Numbered from the stretch's first letter, positions 19,381 to 47,799 are shown. The stretch is DNA of 47,799 nucleotides from Amoeboaphelidium protococcarum X5 (GCA_023515725.1 JALDTO010000223.1:1-47799), one strand, 5' to 3'. Numbers and translations: made by a program. The notes: generated by a model not told the origin, from the letters alone.

Positions 19381-20208
19381 TTGAAATTAAGGAATTTTTA
19401 CTGGCAACAGTCATGCGCGCATAGTTGTTACACCACCTCGTAAATAATCAGGTATCGTACACTTGGACATTTCTCAAAGTTCTCAGCGTGAAATAATTTT
19501 TCATCTATCACGCAATGCCTATTCAGTGATGACATATCGTTCGGTGATTGCAATCACCGTTTGAACAGCTGTCACTGATACAATTTTGCATCATTGTTCA
19601 CTGAACACTTTGATACTTCTTTCCAAATTGAACAAAGTGACACAAGTGGTGCTTTGATGTACCATATTGACCGTATGGTTCTACTAGACCATAATGTGAC
19701 CTTATAGGAGCTGAAAATTAATAATAATAGCCTACAAAGGTCATGTACCGTTTTAGGAAAAATAGGTAATTACATTCAAAGCCGTGATTTAATCAAGGCA
19801 GCGAATGACAAGCTGAATTTGGAATTCGGAGACGAGTATAATTGAGGCAAGTCTCAAGAGAGAAGATTGACCTTAGTTCGAAAACTCTAAGGGAAATTGG
19901 AATAGGGCGATATCCGGCTATCTCCAGCGATTGTTAAGCTGAAACGATCCTAAATCAAGGCTGGTGCAAATGAATTGGCACACAGCATTAAAAAGTTTTT
20001 GAAGAAGCGGACCCCAGATCAGAGAGACGCCATTTAAATTAAGTCTATGATCTAGGGGGCATCTTCTGAGAAGCTTGACGCCCTTGAAGGGGATGTCGAC
20101 TATCTTTATGCAGGTGACTGGTTTCCTCTTAAGGATGACTTTTCTCGACCATAAAGCCGAGCTCCTAGCTCACAAGCGTCTCCAGTCTTATCGCGCCGGG
20201 CCTCATGA
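19381..20208 (+). pseudogene. Degenerate orphan ORF with 3 in-frame TGA codons; possible relic cargo of an older GAPDH-targeting element
   Basis: One frame stays protein-like for ~275 codons but has TGA at 19489, 19576 and 19843; converges on the GAPDH 3' remnant. Confidence 0.45.
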
Positions 20209-20278
20209 CTAGATAATGATAATATAAGATCACATTTAAGATACTTCACTTACTTTCATTTTAATCTTCATATTTCAA

Positions 20279-20338
20279 TCAGTTCTTACCATTCTTCCTG
20301 GCGACGAACAGCAGCAGGTCAATGACACGGTTTGCGTA
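20279..20338 (-). pseudogene. GAPDH: Displaced 3'-terminal fragment of GAPDH ([19 protein letters not shown])
   Basis: 57/60 nt identical to 22852-22911, including the TGA, plus ~15 nt of similar 3' flank. Confidence 0.95.
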
Positions 20339-23944
<3,606 letters not shown>

Positions 23945-37222: not shown

Positions 37223-39493
37223 TCAGTTTGCAGACGTGTCATCATCACTTGCAAATCCAAAATTTGGCCTGTATTGATCGTAAGGACTTTCTTGTTGCTA
37301 TTAGGACTGAAAATATTGCGACATGCCAGATTTCCGCCGGACAGTACCTAGAGATTGCACGGAGTCTGTACGATTCATATTCTCATTCTTACTACTATTT
37401 CCATTATTCGGATGATGAGCATCACTTTAACTATTACCTTAACCATAGTTCTATTCTGTATTGTCTTATTCATTGTCAAAATCTTTCAATCCGGAGAACA
37501 AGCCTAACTGCGCGGACATTGAAGGCTTCAATTTTGTCTCCTTAAGATCATTGGCCTGATAAATGCCACCCAGTAAAGAGCTCTAATCGTTATGAAATGT
37601 CGAGCCTTTTCGCTTGGTCTATTATTTTACATTTTCATTTGAGCCGCCATCCTGAGATTCCATTTCAAGCTCATCCAAATCTTCCTGACTTCGGCTATAC
37701 TTTATTGGTTAACCAACAAAAATGGGCCTCATAATCTTGTCATCGATCCACTTTAACCATTTTAGATCGCGTTCGTACTTGTAAGTGTCTTCATCGTCAT
37801 CATTGTCATCTCCATAGTCATTACTTTCATAATTGCCATCAATTTCATTATCATTGTTGTCAGGTAAACCATTAGAGGGCCGCCTCATTTACCTTCGATC
37901 GTTCTCAGATATCCATCGAACCACGAAACCAATACTACCACCCAGGATTAATATACTGAGTACGCACACTGCCAGAGTTGTGGTTCTTATCTCCTCAACA
38001 GGAGTTCTATCTTTCATCAGTGTAGAATTGGTGGCAGTTCCATTAACAGTAAGAGGTATCTAAGATGGCTTCATGTCCATACTCAAAGCAAACGCTATAG
38101 CTCCACGAAGACCAGCGAACCATAAAATAATTTAATGCGCCATTGGAATCGCTGCTCTAAGATTGGGCTATTATTACTGTTATCCATTGGTATCGCTGAG
38201 CTGTTGCGGCAAGATAACCGAAGAATTGGATCGATCTGATACTCTACTTCTAAGCCACTTATAAGTCACCATTGCCCACTATAATCCATCTTTAGACGCT
38301 CGATAAATTCCAACTTTCCTAGAACTTCGATAGAAATTAACCAACCATGAGAGTGGAAATACCACAGCTCGGGCAGTCAGTACTCCAATAAAACACAAAA
38401 ATATCTCTGCAGGCTTCCACACCATCACTTAGACATCTCCATTATTGATAAGTCCACCGTCAGCATCATTGCCTTTACTACTTGCATCATTATTACTTTC
38501 AGAATTACCACGGTATGAGGAAGCGAATAAAGTAATTCCTAAATAAATGAATATAAAAGTCTCAGATAACTAACTAGTCAACTAGAACAATGAACCCAGA
38601 GTCCTCTTTGTTCTACGAGAAAGAGTAGGCTGAACATAATGCTTAAGAGTAATGCCACAGAACAGTAGAGAGACAATACCACTCAATTCGAGCGCGTTAG
38701 ACAGAAAGTAGCTGGAATAAGCAATTAATGCAACTATACAAGTCTCCAGAGTGCCATATTACGAGCTGCCAATGCCTTTCAGCACACGACCGATAATGAA
38801 AGCACAAGACAGCGCTACTCCAACACCAAGTAGAAAAGATGTGGCAAACGAATACAGAAAATGAAGCAATGCCTTGCCAATAGACTCGCCAGTTATCGGA
38901 TGACCTCTAAATGATTCTAGTGTCTGGTAGAGGACAATACTAACCGCATCATTAAGAACAGATTCTCCAAAAATCACAGCATACAATGATTTATCCAGCG
39001 ATAGATTCTTTAACATGGCCAGCACCGTGACAGGATCCGTAGATGACAAGATACTTCCATACATGAAACATTCAATGATGGTGAGGTTGAGCGATCCAGT
39101 CATAACCAGCAGATACATGAAATATCCAACGATGAATGCAGATATGAACGTGCCAAGGAAAGCGAACAACATTATGCGCCAAAAGTAGAATAAGAACGAT
39201 GATACTTCCATTTCCCATCCACTTTATAGAATGATGGGAGGCAAGAGTAGATTGAAAAAGTACCTATTATCAAATGCAACGCTCAACTTTCCAACAGATA
39301 TCAGACCGACAATCATCCCAAGAACGAGTCCAACCAGTGTCTCATGCACAACTTTAATGCGAAACTTTTTCAGTACAAATGATGCCACCAGAGTCAGGAT
39401 AAGCAATTGTATGAGCAGAAATACAGACACATTACTCGGATCTGACTCCAACTTTAATGCATCGCTATCACTACCACTATCTGAATTTGTCAT
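37223..39493 (-). CDS. NHX1: Endosomal Na+/H+ exchanger (CPA1; NHX1/NHE6-8 type)
   Basis: FFNLLLPPII, ILSSTDPVTVL, IFGESVLNDAVSIVL, LSGIVSLLFCG, LWFAGLRGAIAFAL. Confidence 0.93.
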
Positions 39494-39941
39494 GATAAGT
39501 GATGAACTTAATATTATACGGTAGATTATGAAAAGATATTTGAATTATGTGCGATAACCGGAAAGGAATGATCAATACATTGAGATCAGTTGAAAAAGCG
39601 GACCCGCTTAGAATAATTTCACACAGAGCAAGTAGGAAGGAGCTGATTGATGGGTGATGATCATCGTCTGAGTCGAGTGTGCGGAGATGGAAAGAGCCGC
39701 GATCGACGCGTGCGTTGAAAATTGTCATTGATCGTCAGGTGGTTAACTGGTACATTTAGAAAAGCTCACCTTATTAGAATTTAGGATTTGGGTATTGAGG
39801 GTTTTTTTGGTGTAAGATATATTCATTGTTTCTTATAGGCGTTATCCTTCAAAAATCACATGTGTCTCCCTCACTGAACACTGCAGTCAATTAAAATCGT
39901 GGCTTGAATTCATCAACATGCAATGAAAAATTAAAATAAGG

Positions 39942-40573
39942 TCTCCTTTATTCAACCAAGCGACTTGGGTATCAACTTCCATGCTCTGAGTTTGTTCATT
40001 ATAAGATAGCAGATCTGCATGCGCATCATTTAATAACTCATCAATGCGAACACTAAAATGCCTCAAAGTCACGGCACAATCTCCAGCTACACAATCACGC
40101 TCCATCTCTCCCACTCTCAATCCACCGTCACGACTTCTACCTTCCAATGGCTACCGAGTCAACACTGATCGCGGACCACGAGAACGAGCATGCATTTTAT
40201 CCATGACCATATGTTTCAACTTCTAGTAGAATATAGGACCAAAGAATATATAAGCTTCCAACGGTTCCCCAGTGATACCACTTGTCAAGTAATCTTTGCC
40301 GCCATAATTGAATCCATGATCCACCAGAATCTTGCCCATATCCTCGATTCTACTTCCACCGAATGCAGTACCATATTACAGCTCACCCTTCAATACACCA
40401 GCTTTACCAGCCAACAGCTCAATCATCTTCCCGACTGTCATTCTAGACGGAAAACCATGCGGGTTCATCACGATGTCAGGCGTAATGCCTTAATCGGAGA
40501 ACGGCAGGTCGGTCATCGGGGTAATCAGTCCGCATACACCCTTCTGACCGTGACGACTGGCGAATTTATCACC
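39942..40573 (-). pseudogene. RPC2: Displaced, truncated fragment of RPC2 ([12 protein letters not shown]...GEMERD + first ~50 aa of the intein)
   Basis: Colinear, indel-free 632-bp match to 45257-45888 (offset 5315); no start, no upstream RPC2 sequence. Confidence 0.95.
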
Positions 40574-41395
40574 GAGTCCTGATGGTCGTAACTTGATAAC
40601 AATATGGCTCAATTAGGCAGCAGGTACCCCTTCGTGACCCCTTGAGCACGATGAGTGGTTGTTTAATTACGGCTGGTCTTTCTGTGGCGTATACTGTACC
40701 TTTAAAGTTTGGCGCGATGGTTCCCGCACATACATCCACCCAACTACCTCCCCAACACTGTGAACAAATATGATGGTTGTGAAATCAAATATTTAAGGCA
40801 AATACAACTTCGATGAAGCGGTGTGTTATTGAGTTGTATACTGGGGTCCTGTCATTGTGCTCTGTATGGAAATTGGACCATTACAGTAGTTCTATTAAAT
40901 GTGCGTAGGTACATCCCAAAATGGTAGAGTTATGAGATAGCTCTAAGTGAATGTCAGTCACTGCGTTAATAGTTCTAATTAGATTAGTTCTGGGTGAATA
41001 GCTTTCCACTGTAGTTAAACTCGCTTAATGATATATTAACGCATACGTACAACTCTTCTTCGGTATGTAAGACTTTGGCAGCAATAAAGAGTTCGTTTAA
41101 CTGGATATGAATTTTGAATAAGGCACATCTAGTTCTGTAGAACTGTTGCTGCGTGTCAATTTGGCATAGTTTTGGTGCAATGAAGATGGAGCTATAATGC
41201 CGCTGTAAGCAAAAAGTAATATTGTACCGCACAGGAAGTCTAACTATTCCACTGAATACTCGAAAATTGGCGTTTTGATATCGTATCAATATTTTGTCTT
41301 AAAAATGCGTAAATAGACTCGATTAGCTTGTTACGTGCATCACTAGTGTAATCTCTATTAGTAGACCGTTTTTCGGAATACACCACAGTGAATGA

Positions 41396-43720
41396 ATGAC
41401 ATGTTCTAAAAACATAGCTAGATACGCCAATGAAAATATAGGGCTTTATGTAGTGATTACGTCGGCCGCCGTATCCACTAGACTCTAGCCGTATTTCAGC
41501 TCTGCGAAGCTGGGGATATCGAAGATAGGCAGGAGTTCTACTTTGGCAAGTCCGAATTCAGGCGTCGAGAGCTATAGTCTGAAATACTTACCGTCAATTA
41601 ACGCGGGTCCCACGGTGTATGGTACGCTTGAAGGACTGGAGAATAGAATCACTAGTGTCGAATGCAAGGTGGACTCCCTAAAAGCAAAAGTGGATTCCTT
41701 AAAGATAAATGTGTATTTGGACTGATCGTTTGTTAGTATATGATTTTGATAAAATGGAGTCAGACATAATATATGAGACATCACGTTAGAAATGCTATGC
41801 GGTAATATTTGATTAATCACCTTCAGACGTAGCAAGCTTTGATGAACGTTCTTCTATACATTTGTGATGACTATATTTATGTTCCATACTTTCATGGATA
41901 CCCCACAAGTCATTTCTGATTGATGATGACCATGATGAACAATTATAGTTAGAAAGGATGGCAGAAGATCTGGTCAAGTATGAACACTCTTTGAAATTCT
42001 CATCGCGTCTTTTATGGTCTCCCTTTTAGCGATCTGGCGCTAAACGCTGTAAATGTTATTATGTTAATATTTTCTACTAATGAAGAGAGAAATTACTTTC
42101 ACTGGTTTGGTGTTTTTGGGACGCGACATAATCGTGAGGTTGAGCTTTCTGATAGAGAGGAGGATGATATTTTGATTCTACTTACCGGTGATGTGTCGAC
42201 GCCAACAGTCGCGTCTGTTGATAATGCTCCTGATGATGAATAAGTAAGGTGGTCGATGATGCTGTTTAGGCTGGAGCTTTGAATGTCAATTCACGTATGT
42301 CTACAAGGTTCCACCCTTACGTTTTCCCGGCAGTGCTCAAAAGAGTCATTTTATAATAAAGACATCAGCTGGTTTGTGCGTTCCTCTCCATCTGCGACTC
42401 GACCAGCAGAGCAACTAAAATCTGCCTATTATAATTTTCTGGATACGCTGTCTCGTAAATTTTAGATTCCATGTGTCTGCATGGCGGCGTATCCATCAGC
42501 TGAACCTTTCATCTATTGCTTGCACACTTGTCAATGTCTCTGATGATATATCCTTAGTACCATGCCGGATGTATGAAGAGGGCTCCAGTTTTGGCAGAAG
42601 GTTTGGGCGAAAGCTAACCAGGCATGATGCTAGAAGGTTGGGCGATTGACAGTGGAGCTAGTGAGCATTTCACATCTAATAAATAGTGGTTCTCTTCTAG
42701 CCGCGGATGAAGAATCATAGTTCATCTTTATAGATTATATGTTTCGCCCATGTAGTTTGGGAATTGCTACGTCTCATTTCGTCTCTGAGATGCTGGGATA
42801 GACGTTTTAATTGTAGGGGGTCTCTGAAGACCTCATAAAAATAAGGTTGATGGAAATGTTGACCACTAAGTGTGGTCTGCGTCAAGACGACCTCATTGTG
42901 AAGAGAGGAAGGCGCTGGTACTTTTTGCTGATGAAAAGGCGAGAAGAGTCCCTGCATATCTATCGCCGCCTCCGTCGTTTGTATGCCAAAAGTAAGAACG
43001 TATCTTGGGTGACGCATACGATTCCGAGTGTACCGTGCGCATACTAGGCGAGCAAGACCGCCTATGAAAGTGTTTTGGGAGCTTTGTCCGCTGAGTTTGG
43101 AATGCGAGTGGCTCCAATGGAATAGAGGTCTCACCTCCACCGCATAAATTTGCTCTTAGGATCCCCAGAAGATCACTCTTCCCGCCTTCTGCTGATGCCT
43201 CCTACTCGCCTGAATTCTAGCGGCTTGTAGAGATTGCTAGAGTAAAGAAGAATTCTGTGCTGGTGTTCAACTCCTTGGCTGGCTTTACTGATAACTTTGC
43301 ATTTCTTCTGTGTGCTTGCCAGCATTTTGACTTTTTGGCGTTTTTTTGACCTCAATGCTACAGACAGACAAGTTTCTGCGGCAGTAGTTGGTTCGCGTCG
43401 ATTGTGGCAGATTAAAGGCTCTCTTACGTCATCTGCAATTGCATGTTGGTAGCTCTATTTGCTCAGACTTACTGAGCTTTGGTGATTTTGCTTCTGAAGA
43501 TGAAATTAGGATGAAGCTCGGCAGATTGGGCTGGGAAGTTTCTGGATAGCATTTCAATGATAGGAGAGAATTTATCCGTCGCTTGACTTAGTAGCTTCTC
43601 TATATCAAGGAACGAAGTATCCACCGATCATTGCTCTTATGCATTCTTTCTACGCTCATGGTTACGCTAATGTGATCATGGAAAACGAAGGAAACGAAAT
43701 AGATGCTTAATGTAGATGAA
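41396..43720 (+). pseudogene. Frameshifted, degenerate orphan coding region (cassette cargo), N-terminal coiled-coil-like heptads
   Basis: Chain of protein-like segments in shifting + frames (LEGLENRITSVECKVDSLKAKVDSLK; RPAEQLKSAYYNFLDTL; long segment ~42630-43480); no motif recognised. Confidence 0.4.
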
Positions 43721-43851
43721 GTCAATAGCCATGTAATGGAAAAAGGTACCAGAATTTAAGACCCGCACTTATACGCGTTGGTAGTCTAAATATTTTTTAA
43801 ACTTATACATGATATTTCAATATTGCATTCTACTTATTCTCATTACTTATT

Positions 43852-46800
43852 TCATTCAAGTCTTAGACGCGGTGCAACGTTCATAGCCAACAATTCTTGG
43901 AATAAGAGTTTAGTAGCATACGGCATCTTGAGCGACGAAATATGTTAAGCAGATTTGCAAGTGGAACACCATCCTTCGTATACAATCAGACCGCAGCCTT
44001 CACACACATGAGCGGTGAACTCATCACTCGACTTCATCAGACGCTCATTAAGAAGTCGCGATGCACCATAAGCAACAAGACAATTGTGTACCACAGTTCC
44101 ATTAGCAAGGAAATTGTGATTCTTATGCACCTGAATATCAAAGACGTCTTTCGAACCAATCTTCTACACATCAACAACCTTGACATTCATCACTGGTAGC
44201 ATTTATTATTCACACATTATACCATCTTCAGTGAAATAAACGTTCGCTCCAATATCCGAAAGATACTTTTATGCATCAGCGGTAAATTATTTATCGCCAG
44301 ACGCAATAGGACTCTTACACTGACATTGATCGACTTCTTCGCTAATCTACTGCCTCATAAATTCCACGTGACGTTGGTAGGATACAATAGCCTACAGCTT
44401 CATGCTCTTGAGCACACAGTATCTGAATCCAACAATCTCGTGGAACTTTATTAATTGCGACTCATCAATACAAATACCAATCTTATAGCAATCGCTACCC
44501 ATTGCGGTCAATACTTTGTCGCGTTGTGAATTAAACTGACTGTTATCTTCGATATGAACGTCTTACTAATCCAAACCAAGCCTAACAAGCACTGATCTGA
44601 TATTACTCATGGAATATTACAGAGACTAGACATGTCCCATACTAACTGATTAATTGAACGTAATAGATGTCAGTGAATCCATTTTGCCATCAATATTAAG
44701 CTATAAAGTAGAATCACTACCGCCAAATAATCCAGCCACAAATTCACGTAACAAGGGCATTGGGTATCCTGGATGCAGCATTATGGACGGTATGACAATA
44801 GAAGAGCTTGGAGTTTAATATCTAATCCCTGGATATATAAATGACAATTGACGCAATACTTATTCAGGCACAATCAACTAAAAGCCTTTCTAATCCACAC
44901 AGATATTTACCAATTAACCAGAGATATCATACAAGTCTTGCTGCATATTCGTTGCATCCATCCAATGCTACATGCTCAACGTGTACGTAAACTAGTCAGA
45001 AAGTGCACCTGCAGCCATTAAATATCCCAGTATGCGATGCAGAATACAAAGATTCTGATATTTATCTACAGAGCTAACATTACATTAAAGCATTTCATCG
45101 CTAATAGAGACAAGAGGCAGTTCTAGACTTTTACAAACCCGAATTCCATCAATATCCTACGCAGCTCTCCACTAACCATCAGAACACATGACTTTATGAT
45201 CTGGGGTCACGTCAAGATGAGTACCATCTTCAAACTCCACACGCACACACTCACGCTCTCCTTTATTCAACCAAGCGACTTGAGTATCAACTTCCACGCC
45301 TTGAGTCTACTCATTATAAGATAGCAGATCTGCATGCTCATCATTTGATAACTCATCAATGCGAACACTAAAATGCCTCAAACTTACGGCACTATCTCCA
45401 GCTACACAATCACGCTCCATCTCTCCCACTCTCAATCCACCGTCACGACTTCTACCTTCCAGTGGCTACCGAGTCAACACTGATCGCGGACCACGCGAAC
45501 GAGCGTGCATCTTATCCATGACCATATGTTTCAACTTCTAATAGAATATGGGACCAAAGAATATATAAGCTTCCAACGGTTCCCCAGTGATACCACTTGT
45601 CAAGTAATCTTTGCCGCCATAATTGAATCCATGATCCACCAGAATCTTGCCCATATCCTCTATTCTACTTCCACCGAATGCAGTACCATATTACAGCTCA
45701 CCCTTCAATACACCAGCTTTACCAGCCAAGAGCTCAATCATCTTCCCGACTGTCATTCTAGACGGAAAACCATGCGGGTTCATCACGATGTCGGGCGTAA
45801 TGCCTTAATCGGAGAACGGCAGGTCGGTCATCGGGGTAATCAATCCGCAAACGCCCTTCTGACCGTGACGACTGGCGAATTTATCACCCAATTCAGGCCG
45901 TCTAGTCTACCTGATATTCACCTTGATATTCATACTAGACTCAGTATTAGCGGACACCATAACTTTATCGATGTGGGCGCTTTTCAGACTCTTGAATGAC
46001 ATTGGCGAATTCAGATACGTGATAGATGACGGTCCACTATCATTCGCTGCGAAATCTGATCTCTTCTCCTTCGGTTCCTGTTTATTCAAATACACTTGTC
46101 CACTCTTAATCTCACATCCGACATGTGCTATACCGTCACGGTCGAGACAGGCAAATTTCTGCGCAACGTTTCCATTGGCATCAGCGACAGGACCAACAAG
46201 CCTGTCATAGCTCTACTAGCTATACTGCTTCAGACTACACTAAAACTTTTTGGACACTACACAACGCCCAAAGCCGCGATCCAAGGAACTTTTACTCAGA
46301 ATCAAAGCATCTTCAATATCATAACCTGAGTAGGACATGATGGCCACAATGGCGTTCTATCCAGCAGGAAGCTTGTCATAGTTAATCAACTCAATTGCCT
46401 TAGTCTTCACCATAGGTTGCTGAGGATAGACTAAAGCTTAAAGGAGAGTATCGATTCTTGCAAACTGATTATAAGCTAATATAGACTAAGACTATTTAGC
46501 CATCGCGCACGTAAAAGTAATACGCGCACACTAATCATGATGAGGATATGGAATTATACCAGCGACAGCTCCTAATAAAGTAAAAGGCTCAATTTCCACA
46601 TGAGTGGTCTCACCAGGTATAATCTCACTTTCATACATGGCAATCAGGGAATCGTTCTCTTCATTGACATCCAAATACTCCACCAGGCCATCCTTGAGAA
46701 AATCTTAGAATACTCTTTTTCCACTGGTGAGCTCTTTCATATGCTTATCTTTCACTAAAGGCTGACCTTTCTTGTCAACAATAATAAGTGGGCGGCAAAT

Positions 46801-47799
46801 ACGACCACCATCAGCAGATATGTGAACACTCTTCTAATTAGGATTCAGCGAGATGCTCACAAATTCATTAATCTTTCCATTACGTCTCATAGTGCGCAAT
46901 TTTGCGGCAAGAATATCTGGCCTAACATGAATACCGATGAGCGTACCATTGACGAAGACCATAAACGGTTGGTGGCCATTTACAGGAGCATGGATCTCTA
47001 AGCCATTGAGTAGAGAGATATCCTCAACACCCAGTGAGTATGCATAATTCAGTAACTCATCTTCATCCTGGTCAGTCGTCACATGAGTCATCAGAGCTAA
47101 ATTCTTCACCAATCCACACGCTTCACCTTCTGGAGTGTCGCTAGAGCATATCCTACCGTACTGGGACATTTGCAGCGAACGCGGACCACTAACCTTTCGC
47201 GTCTTCTCAAACTGAGAGGTGATACGCATCATCATGCCCAGGGAGGAGATATAAGACAATCGAGACAACACCTGCGTCACACCAGCTCTCTCCATCTTGA
47301 ATCGCTTCAAAGTCCAATTCCCAGTGGATATAGCACGTACCAGACCATCAGTTATAGTGGACTATGCCAACGGCAGGAAGCGAGAAGCATCAAACTCGGT
47401 GGCTCTCGATGGTTTCTACAAAGTCTTGTCGATAAGCGACTTCAATTGATGCTGGAACGTTTTAAACAAATCTTCAAAGAGGAGAGAGAGTAACTATCCG
47501 GCCAATTCCAATCGCTTATTACCCACGTAATCTCTATCATCAATCTGAGTCTTATCATGCAGAGCCAAGAGAACGCGTCTAGCCATTAGAGCCAGATAAG
47601 CGGCCTTGGGCTTAAAATTAGTGTCATTCACAGCAACGTGTGCCAGTACCAGGTCAGCTAGAGCATTGTAAGCCTCTTCAGCAGGTGGTTTCTTGATACT
47701 CATAGACTTATTAGCCCATCCAGTACCGCGCGACAACTTCACTCTCGTGCCCACATACTCCAAGCACTGATTGCGCGTATGAAGGTCCATCTAGGAGGA
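43852..47799 (-). CDS. RPC2: RNA polymerase III second-largest subunit (5' end outside the window), intein-containing
   Basis: [79 protein letters not shown]|[19 protein letters not shown]; Pol III-type residues. Confidence 0.97.
44083..45408 (-). mobile_element. Intein (442 aa) with a degenerate LAGLIDADG-type endonuclease domain, inserted at GEMERD|CLVAYG
   Basis: Block A CVAGDSAV, block B VTPDHKV, LAGLIDADG-like [10 protein letters not shown] and [10 protein letters not shown], blocks [23 protein letters not shown] followed by +1 Cys. Confidence 0.95.

Follow-up and report, generated by a model that had tools for sequence, protein, structure and literature searches.

A displaced 3′ end of RPC2 in the duplicated genome of Amoeboaphelidium protococcarum that looks like an old partial duplicate under gene conversion

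Partial tandem duplicates can undergo concerted evolution, that is, non-allelic gene conversion between a gene and its pseudogene. The lambdoid prophages e14 and phage 21 replace the 3′ end of the E. coli icd gene on integration and, according to standard repair models, homing into an empty allele leaves the complete distal end of the recipient as a displaced copy. In fungal mitochondria, C-terminal replacements have been described for Allomyces atp6 and for Glomus atp6, atp9, cox2 and nad3; an endonuclease frame lies between the copies and the in-line end is foreign (PMC3630166). Inteins have been described in second subunits of nuclear RNA polymerases (PMC1635734).

We analyzed a stretch of 47,799 nucleotides from A. 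protococcarum X5 (GCA_023515725.1, JALDTO010000223.1:1-47799), hereafter the window, in which RPC2, an essential RNA polymerase III gene, is followed by a second copy of part of its 3′ end. The assembly comprises 23.6 Mb in 346 contigs and includes homeologous contig pairs; genome-wide duplications of this organism have been mentioned (PMC10608142). The homeolog of the window is an independent 921-kb contig (G000:C192), which carries the same RPC2 junction and the same filler between the copies, with a different internal deletion. A literature search found no description of this RPC2 locus.

As in partial tandem duplicates under concerted evolution, the RPC2 copies group in cis, show a tract-like refresh, have decayed or deleted distal parts and are accompanied by an old flanking duplicate. 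Unlike in such duplicates, the presumably converted block begins at an invariant polymerase motif and includes the start of a putative intein, and the window copy is synonymous-only at a dS of 0.12, which implies a diverged functional donor allele. With the mitochondrial replacements, the locus shares the order of gene, foreign DNA and second gene 3′ end, so that an insert is flanked by a duplicated host-gene end, and the differences between the copies can be synonymous in both cases. In contrast to them, the RPC2 case is nuclear, has no LAGLIDADG or GIY-YIG frame between the copies, involves a duplicated end of about 2 kb and has shown no empty allele, either in the homeolog or in the joints listed for four runs; moreover, its in-line end is 97.5% identical to the displaced copy, versus 64–81% in Glomus, and is not foreign. 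The locus looks like a C-terminal replacement element, but departs from one on three defining points. As with e14 and phage 21 at icd, a displaced gene end with synonymous differences lies downstream; in contrast to these prophages, the RPC2 filler is without integrase, att-like core, sign of excision or related element elsewhere.

The displaced RPC2 end in the window and in its homeolog

All RPC2 frames were translated reading TAA and TAG as Gln (code 6), as the long frames are open only under that reading. The features of the locus are the following:

37226–39493, − strand: NHX-type Na+/H+ exchanger, as judged from its sequence; downstream neighbor, syntenic in the homeolog
39942–40090, − strand: displaced RPC2 copy, first 49 codons of the putative intein; ends at a deletion
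40091–40573, − strand: displaced RPC2 copy, polymerase codons 1–161
40574–40600, − strand: possible unconverted, diverged edge of the duplicate; 6–8 weakly RPC2-like codons upstream of GDKF
40574–43851, no strand assigned: decayed filler common to window and homeolog; 11% substitutions, 26 alignment blocks, no intact gene
40733–40969, no strand assigned: segment X1, 62% identical to X2, the sequence right after the Fic gene in the homeolog (C192:535300-535528)
41780–41927, + strand: relic that is 74% identical in DNA to the 5′ part of L008, a copia-like element at another genomic place; tblastx E about 1e-12
42639–42674, + strand: relic of a copia-type aspartic protease motif, WAIDSGASEHFT, from six-frame translation; aligns with the protease motif of L008
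43852–47799, − strand: in-line functional RPC2 gene, 3′ part; open frame of 1315 codons, 5′ end beyond the window
43852–43854, − strand: TGA stop of the in-line gene
43855–45888, − strand: RPC2 segment that was duplicated, from GDKF to the last codon, about 2.0 kb, as judged from the equivalents in the homeologous displaced copy
44083–45408, − strand: putative 442-aa intein at GEMERD/C of RPC2

When the window was compared with itself by BLAST, positions 39942–40573 aligned with 45257–45888 over 632 bp without gaps (96.2% identity, 24 differences). Both copies lie on the − strand and start at the GDKF motif; the sequence-only reading had already placed the start of the copy at an invariant motif. 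Within the 161 polymerase codons, all 12 differences between the in-line and the displaced copy are synonymous, including the codon examples given earlier (dN 0, dS 0.12); the neutral probability of 12 synonymous differences out of 12 is below 1e-6 at every transition bias tried. The last 149 bp, corresponding to the start of the putative intein, contain 12 further differences, six of them amino-acid-changing, a ratio resembling that between two functional inteins, those of the window and the homeolog. The three differences that had been pointed out in the 50 bp next to the junction are present, but their clustering does not go beyond chance (p = 0.12).

The Pfam model over the displaced copy extends to 40597, and the weak RPC2 similarity upstream of GDKF suggests that the true edge of the duplicate may lie 6–8 codons upstream of this motif. 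In anchored alignments, the score of the homeolog edge was reached by 1–5 of 100 shuffles; that of the window edge was not significant. In the in-line gene, PF00562 scores above cut-off at 45445–46566. Within the − strand interval 46435–46540, a conserved RPC2 motif that usually reads NQSPRNTYQCAMGKQ is altered in both homeologs; a distant RPC2 gene (L070) keeps the usual NQSPRNT. The 46 bp adjoining the deletion junction (39896–39941) have no match among the other fetched loci.

The insert in RPC2 is predicted to be an intein: it is in frame, begins with Cys, ends in His-Asn, is followed by Cys at position +1 and is similar to splicing domains. The Rpb2_7 domain of RPC2 is split around it, and PF14890 matches its C-terminal end with a score below cut-off (E 6e-6). 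A Cys…His-Asn/Cys intein at a conserved site is a likeness to the described polymerase inteins (PMC1635734), and domain position suggests that the site is the "anchor" site of Chlamydomonas RPB2-a; unlike in those cases, the putative intein lies here 161 codons inside the duplicated segment and not at its edge. In the outgroup search, the intein piece gave four weak matches.

The homeologous displaced copy keeps the equivalents of 45161–45894 and 43855–44026: it starts at GDKF, extends about 80 codons into the intein and, after a deletion of 1134 bp, picks up again for the final 57 codons of RPC2. As these last codons are kept, the duplicated segment was the whole 2-kb 3′ end of the gene. The displaced copy is followed by a Fic gene (L006:3-1211; G000:C192:534200-535275) and then by NHX. 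The Fic gene is apparently intact, with PF02661 above cut-off, and has three matches in the genome including itself, none of them on the contig of the window. It begins directly after the displaced RPC2 end and in frame with it, with a possible 75-nt intron past the first ATG. By comparison with the homeolog, the window has probably later lost by deletion both the distal part of its displaced copy and the Fic gene.

The 3.3 kb between the copies had been described as foreign + strand cargo. Such a filler is present; it is, however, decayed, and its sole recognizable content consists of the copia-like gag and protease relics, which are on the + strand. Neither an intact nuclease or integrase frame nor a Pfam nuclease match was found in the stop-free pieces scanned of the decayed filler of either homeolog. 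At the filler ends no att-like core or integrase was seen, and the ends are absent elsewhere in the genome searches. Rfam gave no matches over 39500–44200, and no Fic remnants were found in the window filler. A coiled-coil frame at 41543–41722 matches the homeolog only, and the filler is not clearly less diverged between the homeologs than other intergenic DNA.

Segments X1 and X2 (240 bp) were matched by blastn (E 3e-13 and 2e-15) and by nhmmer (E 2e-12 and 8e-14), and a search with the X core pattern gave three places in the genome, all at the RPC2 locus. Their identity of 62% compares with roughly 75–90% for intergenic DNA between homeologs; the duplication of X is much older than the split between window and homeolog. 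The duplicated unit is not cleanly reconstructed, because X1 is not preceded by a Fic remnant and the 160 bp that follow it have no clear counterpart after X2.

Duplication and gene conversion at RPC2

The dS values between window and homeolog are 0.22 for RPC2 upstream of the junction, 0.26 for the copy and 0.29 for the C-terminus, without any break at the junction. Over the 632 bp, 20 sites group the copies by homeolog, none by position (in-line versus displaced) and one crosswise, and no base sets both in-line copies apart from both displaced copies. Because the junction and the filler predate the split and yet the copies group by homeolog, each displaced copy appears to have been rewritten from its own lineage since then. 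A search with RPC2 and intein pieces for a close outgroup found none (best match 73%); L070 is intein-free and without duplicate.

In its polymerase part, the window displaced copy has five private changes, and every one of them is synonymous (p about 0.002 under neutrality); together with the 12 synonymous differences, these support its derivation from a functional allele. Three of the five lie within 16 bp, pointing to a short tract, and codons 12–13 of this copy are those of the in-line gene of the homeolog. The homeologous displaced copy carries replacement changes, namely A70V and, within the conserved GG(L)R motif, L152S. Its private changes number 8 in the junction-near 630 bp versus 25 in the distal 270 bp (p = 4e-8), and the distal piece has eight changed amino acids and a frameshift. 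A neutrally decaying tandem duplicate had been expected to show replacement changes; the homeolog copy does carry them, which speaks against displacement of the whole end, and the polymerase part of the window copy has none.

We consider it probable that the RPC2 structure is an old partial duplicate maintained by conversion from functional alleles; a new mobile element seems a poorer account of the locus than duplication combined with gene conversion. The anatomy, its presence in both homeologs and in other samples, the grouping in cis, the gradient from fresh to decayed and the X duplicate are observed; we infer that the structure arose by tandem duplication, that conversion acts on it and that the donor allele was unlike the present in-line one. 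An old tandem duplication would have copied the last 2 kb of RPC2, intein included, together with downstream sequence through segment X; the duplicated X flank, at 62% identity and unique to this locus, points to such an event. One 3′ copy would have remained in line with the gene and the other would have become a headless pseudogene, the interval between them gaining insertions (the copia relic and, after the homeolog copy, the Fic gene) as well as deletions. Given the 5.3 kb between the copies, the junction-near part of the pseudogene would repeatedly be replaced, through gene conversion or unequal exchange, by that of any functional RPC2 allele encountered, so that the pseudogene would differ from its present neighbor at synonymous sites only. 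Tract-wise conversion would explain both the synonymous-only private changes of the window copy and the onset of decay in the homeolog copy.

The sequence-only reading took both copies for functional alleles, one of which displaced the other. Its first part stands insofar as the window copy appears to come from a functional allele. Displacement of the whole end is not the best reading: a single displacement would give the whole end one age, whereas the ages are patchy, and there is neither recoding nor a break in dS. Patchwise conversion fits better, also because the copies group 20:0 by homeolog although junction and filler predate the split. Against tandem duplication, a random event would require neither that the refreshed block begin almost exactly at the invariant motif nor that the older block stop at the last codon. 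Against conversion, the lack of amino-acid changes at a dS of 0.12 calls for a diverged allele as donor and a very recent tract; no such donor was found. Also against this explanation, the similar layouts at GAPDH and HEM2 need separate origins.

If duplication followed by conversion is the right reading, a dead gene fragment looks selected here because conversion imports functional alleles, which is a warning for scans that take synonymous-only divergence as proof of displacement or function; allele exchange would also continue within each subgenome of the duplicated genome.

Cassettes, insertions and the ends of other genes

A less likely, though still conceivable, explanation is that the locus is the relic of a nuclear homing or integrative cassette which cut at the GDKF codons and brought a replacement 3′ end. 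In that case, X would mark the end of the cassette and the Fic block would represent one that had come before, as in a serial replacement; the nuclease would have decayed beyond recognition and conversion would have come later. In a fuller form of this proposal, the locus would be what is left of a nuclear selfish cassette that cuts an essential gene at an invariant motif and supplies a new 3′ end; the copia-invaded filler and the Fic block would be serial cassettes with X as their common end, and the whole a nuclear counterpart of the mitochondrial C-terminal replacement elements. We likewise hold this form to be rather unlikely. The layout does match that of the endonuclease-borne replacements in fungal mitochondria (PMC3630166), a cassette is somewhat favored by block boundaries that coincide with an invariant motif and with the last codon, the window displaced copy is a functional-type allele, and gene-end duplications recur at GAPDH and HEM2. 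On the other hand, the filler bears no nuclease trace, and the genome searches found neither X nor the filler end at any other place. No site sets the in-line copies apart from the displaced ones, nor is there a cut-resistant recoding common to both in-line genes. The in-line end is not foreign compared with the rest of the gene, although this comparison could not reveal a break that predates the homeolog split. Standard repair models also predict that a homing event at an empty allele renews the displaced copy in its distal part, whereas the observed gradient runs the other way. Finally, neither the homeolog nor the listed joints of four runs contain an empty allele, contigs of this kind showing presence and not absence. 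A cassette that had come in ahead of the homeolog split and had since decayed would escape these tests. Should the cassette reading be true, the locus would represent a natural nuclear cut-and-rescue drive. To our knowledge, natural drives of this type have been described for organelles and prokaryotes only.

A retroelement or other insertion at the GDKF codons, with a very long target-site duplication and subsequent conversion, we regard as quite improbable. RPC2 would have survived such an insertion because the target duplication happened to include the stop codon. A copia relic is indeed present in the RPC2 filler, but it is internal and not at the filler ends; the junction at 40574 has no LINE-like 3′ end or A-T tail, a 2-kb target duplication is far above the 14–16 bp seen for the LINE-like repeat of this genome, and X1 and X2 are left unexplained. 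The neighboring GAPDH structure, which looks like an insertion, also speaks for this reading:

20339–20700, − strand: 3′ end of a LINE-like repeat abutting the displaced GAPDH copy; also in L020, L021, L025, L030 and L034

The duplication of the GAPDH end was confirmed (72 bp), and the homeolog is without insert. A dispersed, 5′-truncated repeat with 16 matches has its 3′ end exactly at the junction 20338/20339; two of the matches have flanking repeats of 14–16 bp and one a CCHC-like frame, and the repeat reads as a putative LINE. Non-LTR retrotransposon insertion with target-site duplication fits this locus, where the repeat end abuts the displaced copy, and GAPDH may represent an insertion with a target duplication of 85 bp or so that includes the stop codon; no such end exists at RPC2. 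A homeologous pair, L018:1501-2552 (C264) and L019:1501-2089 (C98), holds, upstream of a PP2C-like gene, a 70–72% copy of the LINE-like end plus the GAPDH tail. L018 matches window positions 19756–20810, and the fetched flanks of the pair contain no GAPDH gene. This pair suggests that the GAPDH structure is older than the homeolog split and was lost from C192.

Also near GAPDH, a + strand frame of 554 codons (20911–22572) combines a PD-(D/E)xK-like stretch with a kinase-like domain. The genome contains 25 further matches to it, and some of these form tandem or inverted pairs. A nuclease-kinase family travelling with gene-end duplications was considered and rejected, as none of these 25 matches, some of which lie at contig ends, has a comparable repeat pair within 1.5 kb.

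At HEM2, the last 59 bp and part of the 3′ flank are repeated 1.8 kb downstream (G000:C213:128318-128525; 82–85% identity), and no such match is listed on the homeolog C179. Recurrence of the gene-end-duplication layout is real. The further proposal of a genome-wide element family was not borne out: GAPDH and RPC2 share neither cargo nor end sequence, the fetched HEM2 flank matches neither of them, and RPA2 and RPB2, which share the GDKF motif, are without displaced copy. The gene-end duplications at these three essential genes apparently arose by different routes, and they suggest a survival filter by which, in a gene-dense genome, an event inside an essential gene would persist only if the 3′ end is regenerated. 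An extra Rpb2_6 fragment (model positions 290–373) was noticed near a contig edge at G000:C77:318-563.

Coding potential of the displaced piece and integrity of the contig

That purifying selection acts on the displaced piece itself, which would then be an alternative exon or encode a small protein, is very improbable. The window copy has no amino-acid change in 161 codons and its open frame continues upstream of the junction; the homeolog copy, however, has A70V and L152S and is without upstream open frame, inspection found no conserved in-frame splice path, the product would miss both ends of RPC2, and a search of RNA runs found none that contains the stretch.

The structure was also searched for in other samples, where the evidence consists of short-read contigs, none covering the entire stretch. 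A contig of run X4 crosses the 39941/39942 junction without differences and one of sample X8 does so with 18 substitutions and 18 gap letters; X8 also shows the homeolog-type 1134-bp deletion joint (44026–45161). In an independent metagenome from 2013 (X5), a contig crosses 40573/40574 with a short side of 30 letters, one below the bridging threshold. The possibility raised earlier that the duplicate is a mis-joined haplotype or homeolog can be dismissed as extremely improbable: although the contig is chimeric nearby (47200–47799 is identical to the homeolog, and the true continuation follows the gap at 47800), the same structure lies, with another internal deletion, on the independent 921-kb contig, and the contigs from X4, X5 and X8 carry its joints.

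The local chimera itself comprises window positions 47200–47799 and L013:3802-4787, the last 600 bp being those of the homeolog and the continuation following a single N, and it is unrelated to the repeat. The 97% overlap past the gap at 47800 was considered as a second allele and rejected, as it corresponds to this assembly switch. At the start of the contig, positions 1–76 are repeated exactly at 294–369, possibly as an assembly edge effect.
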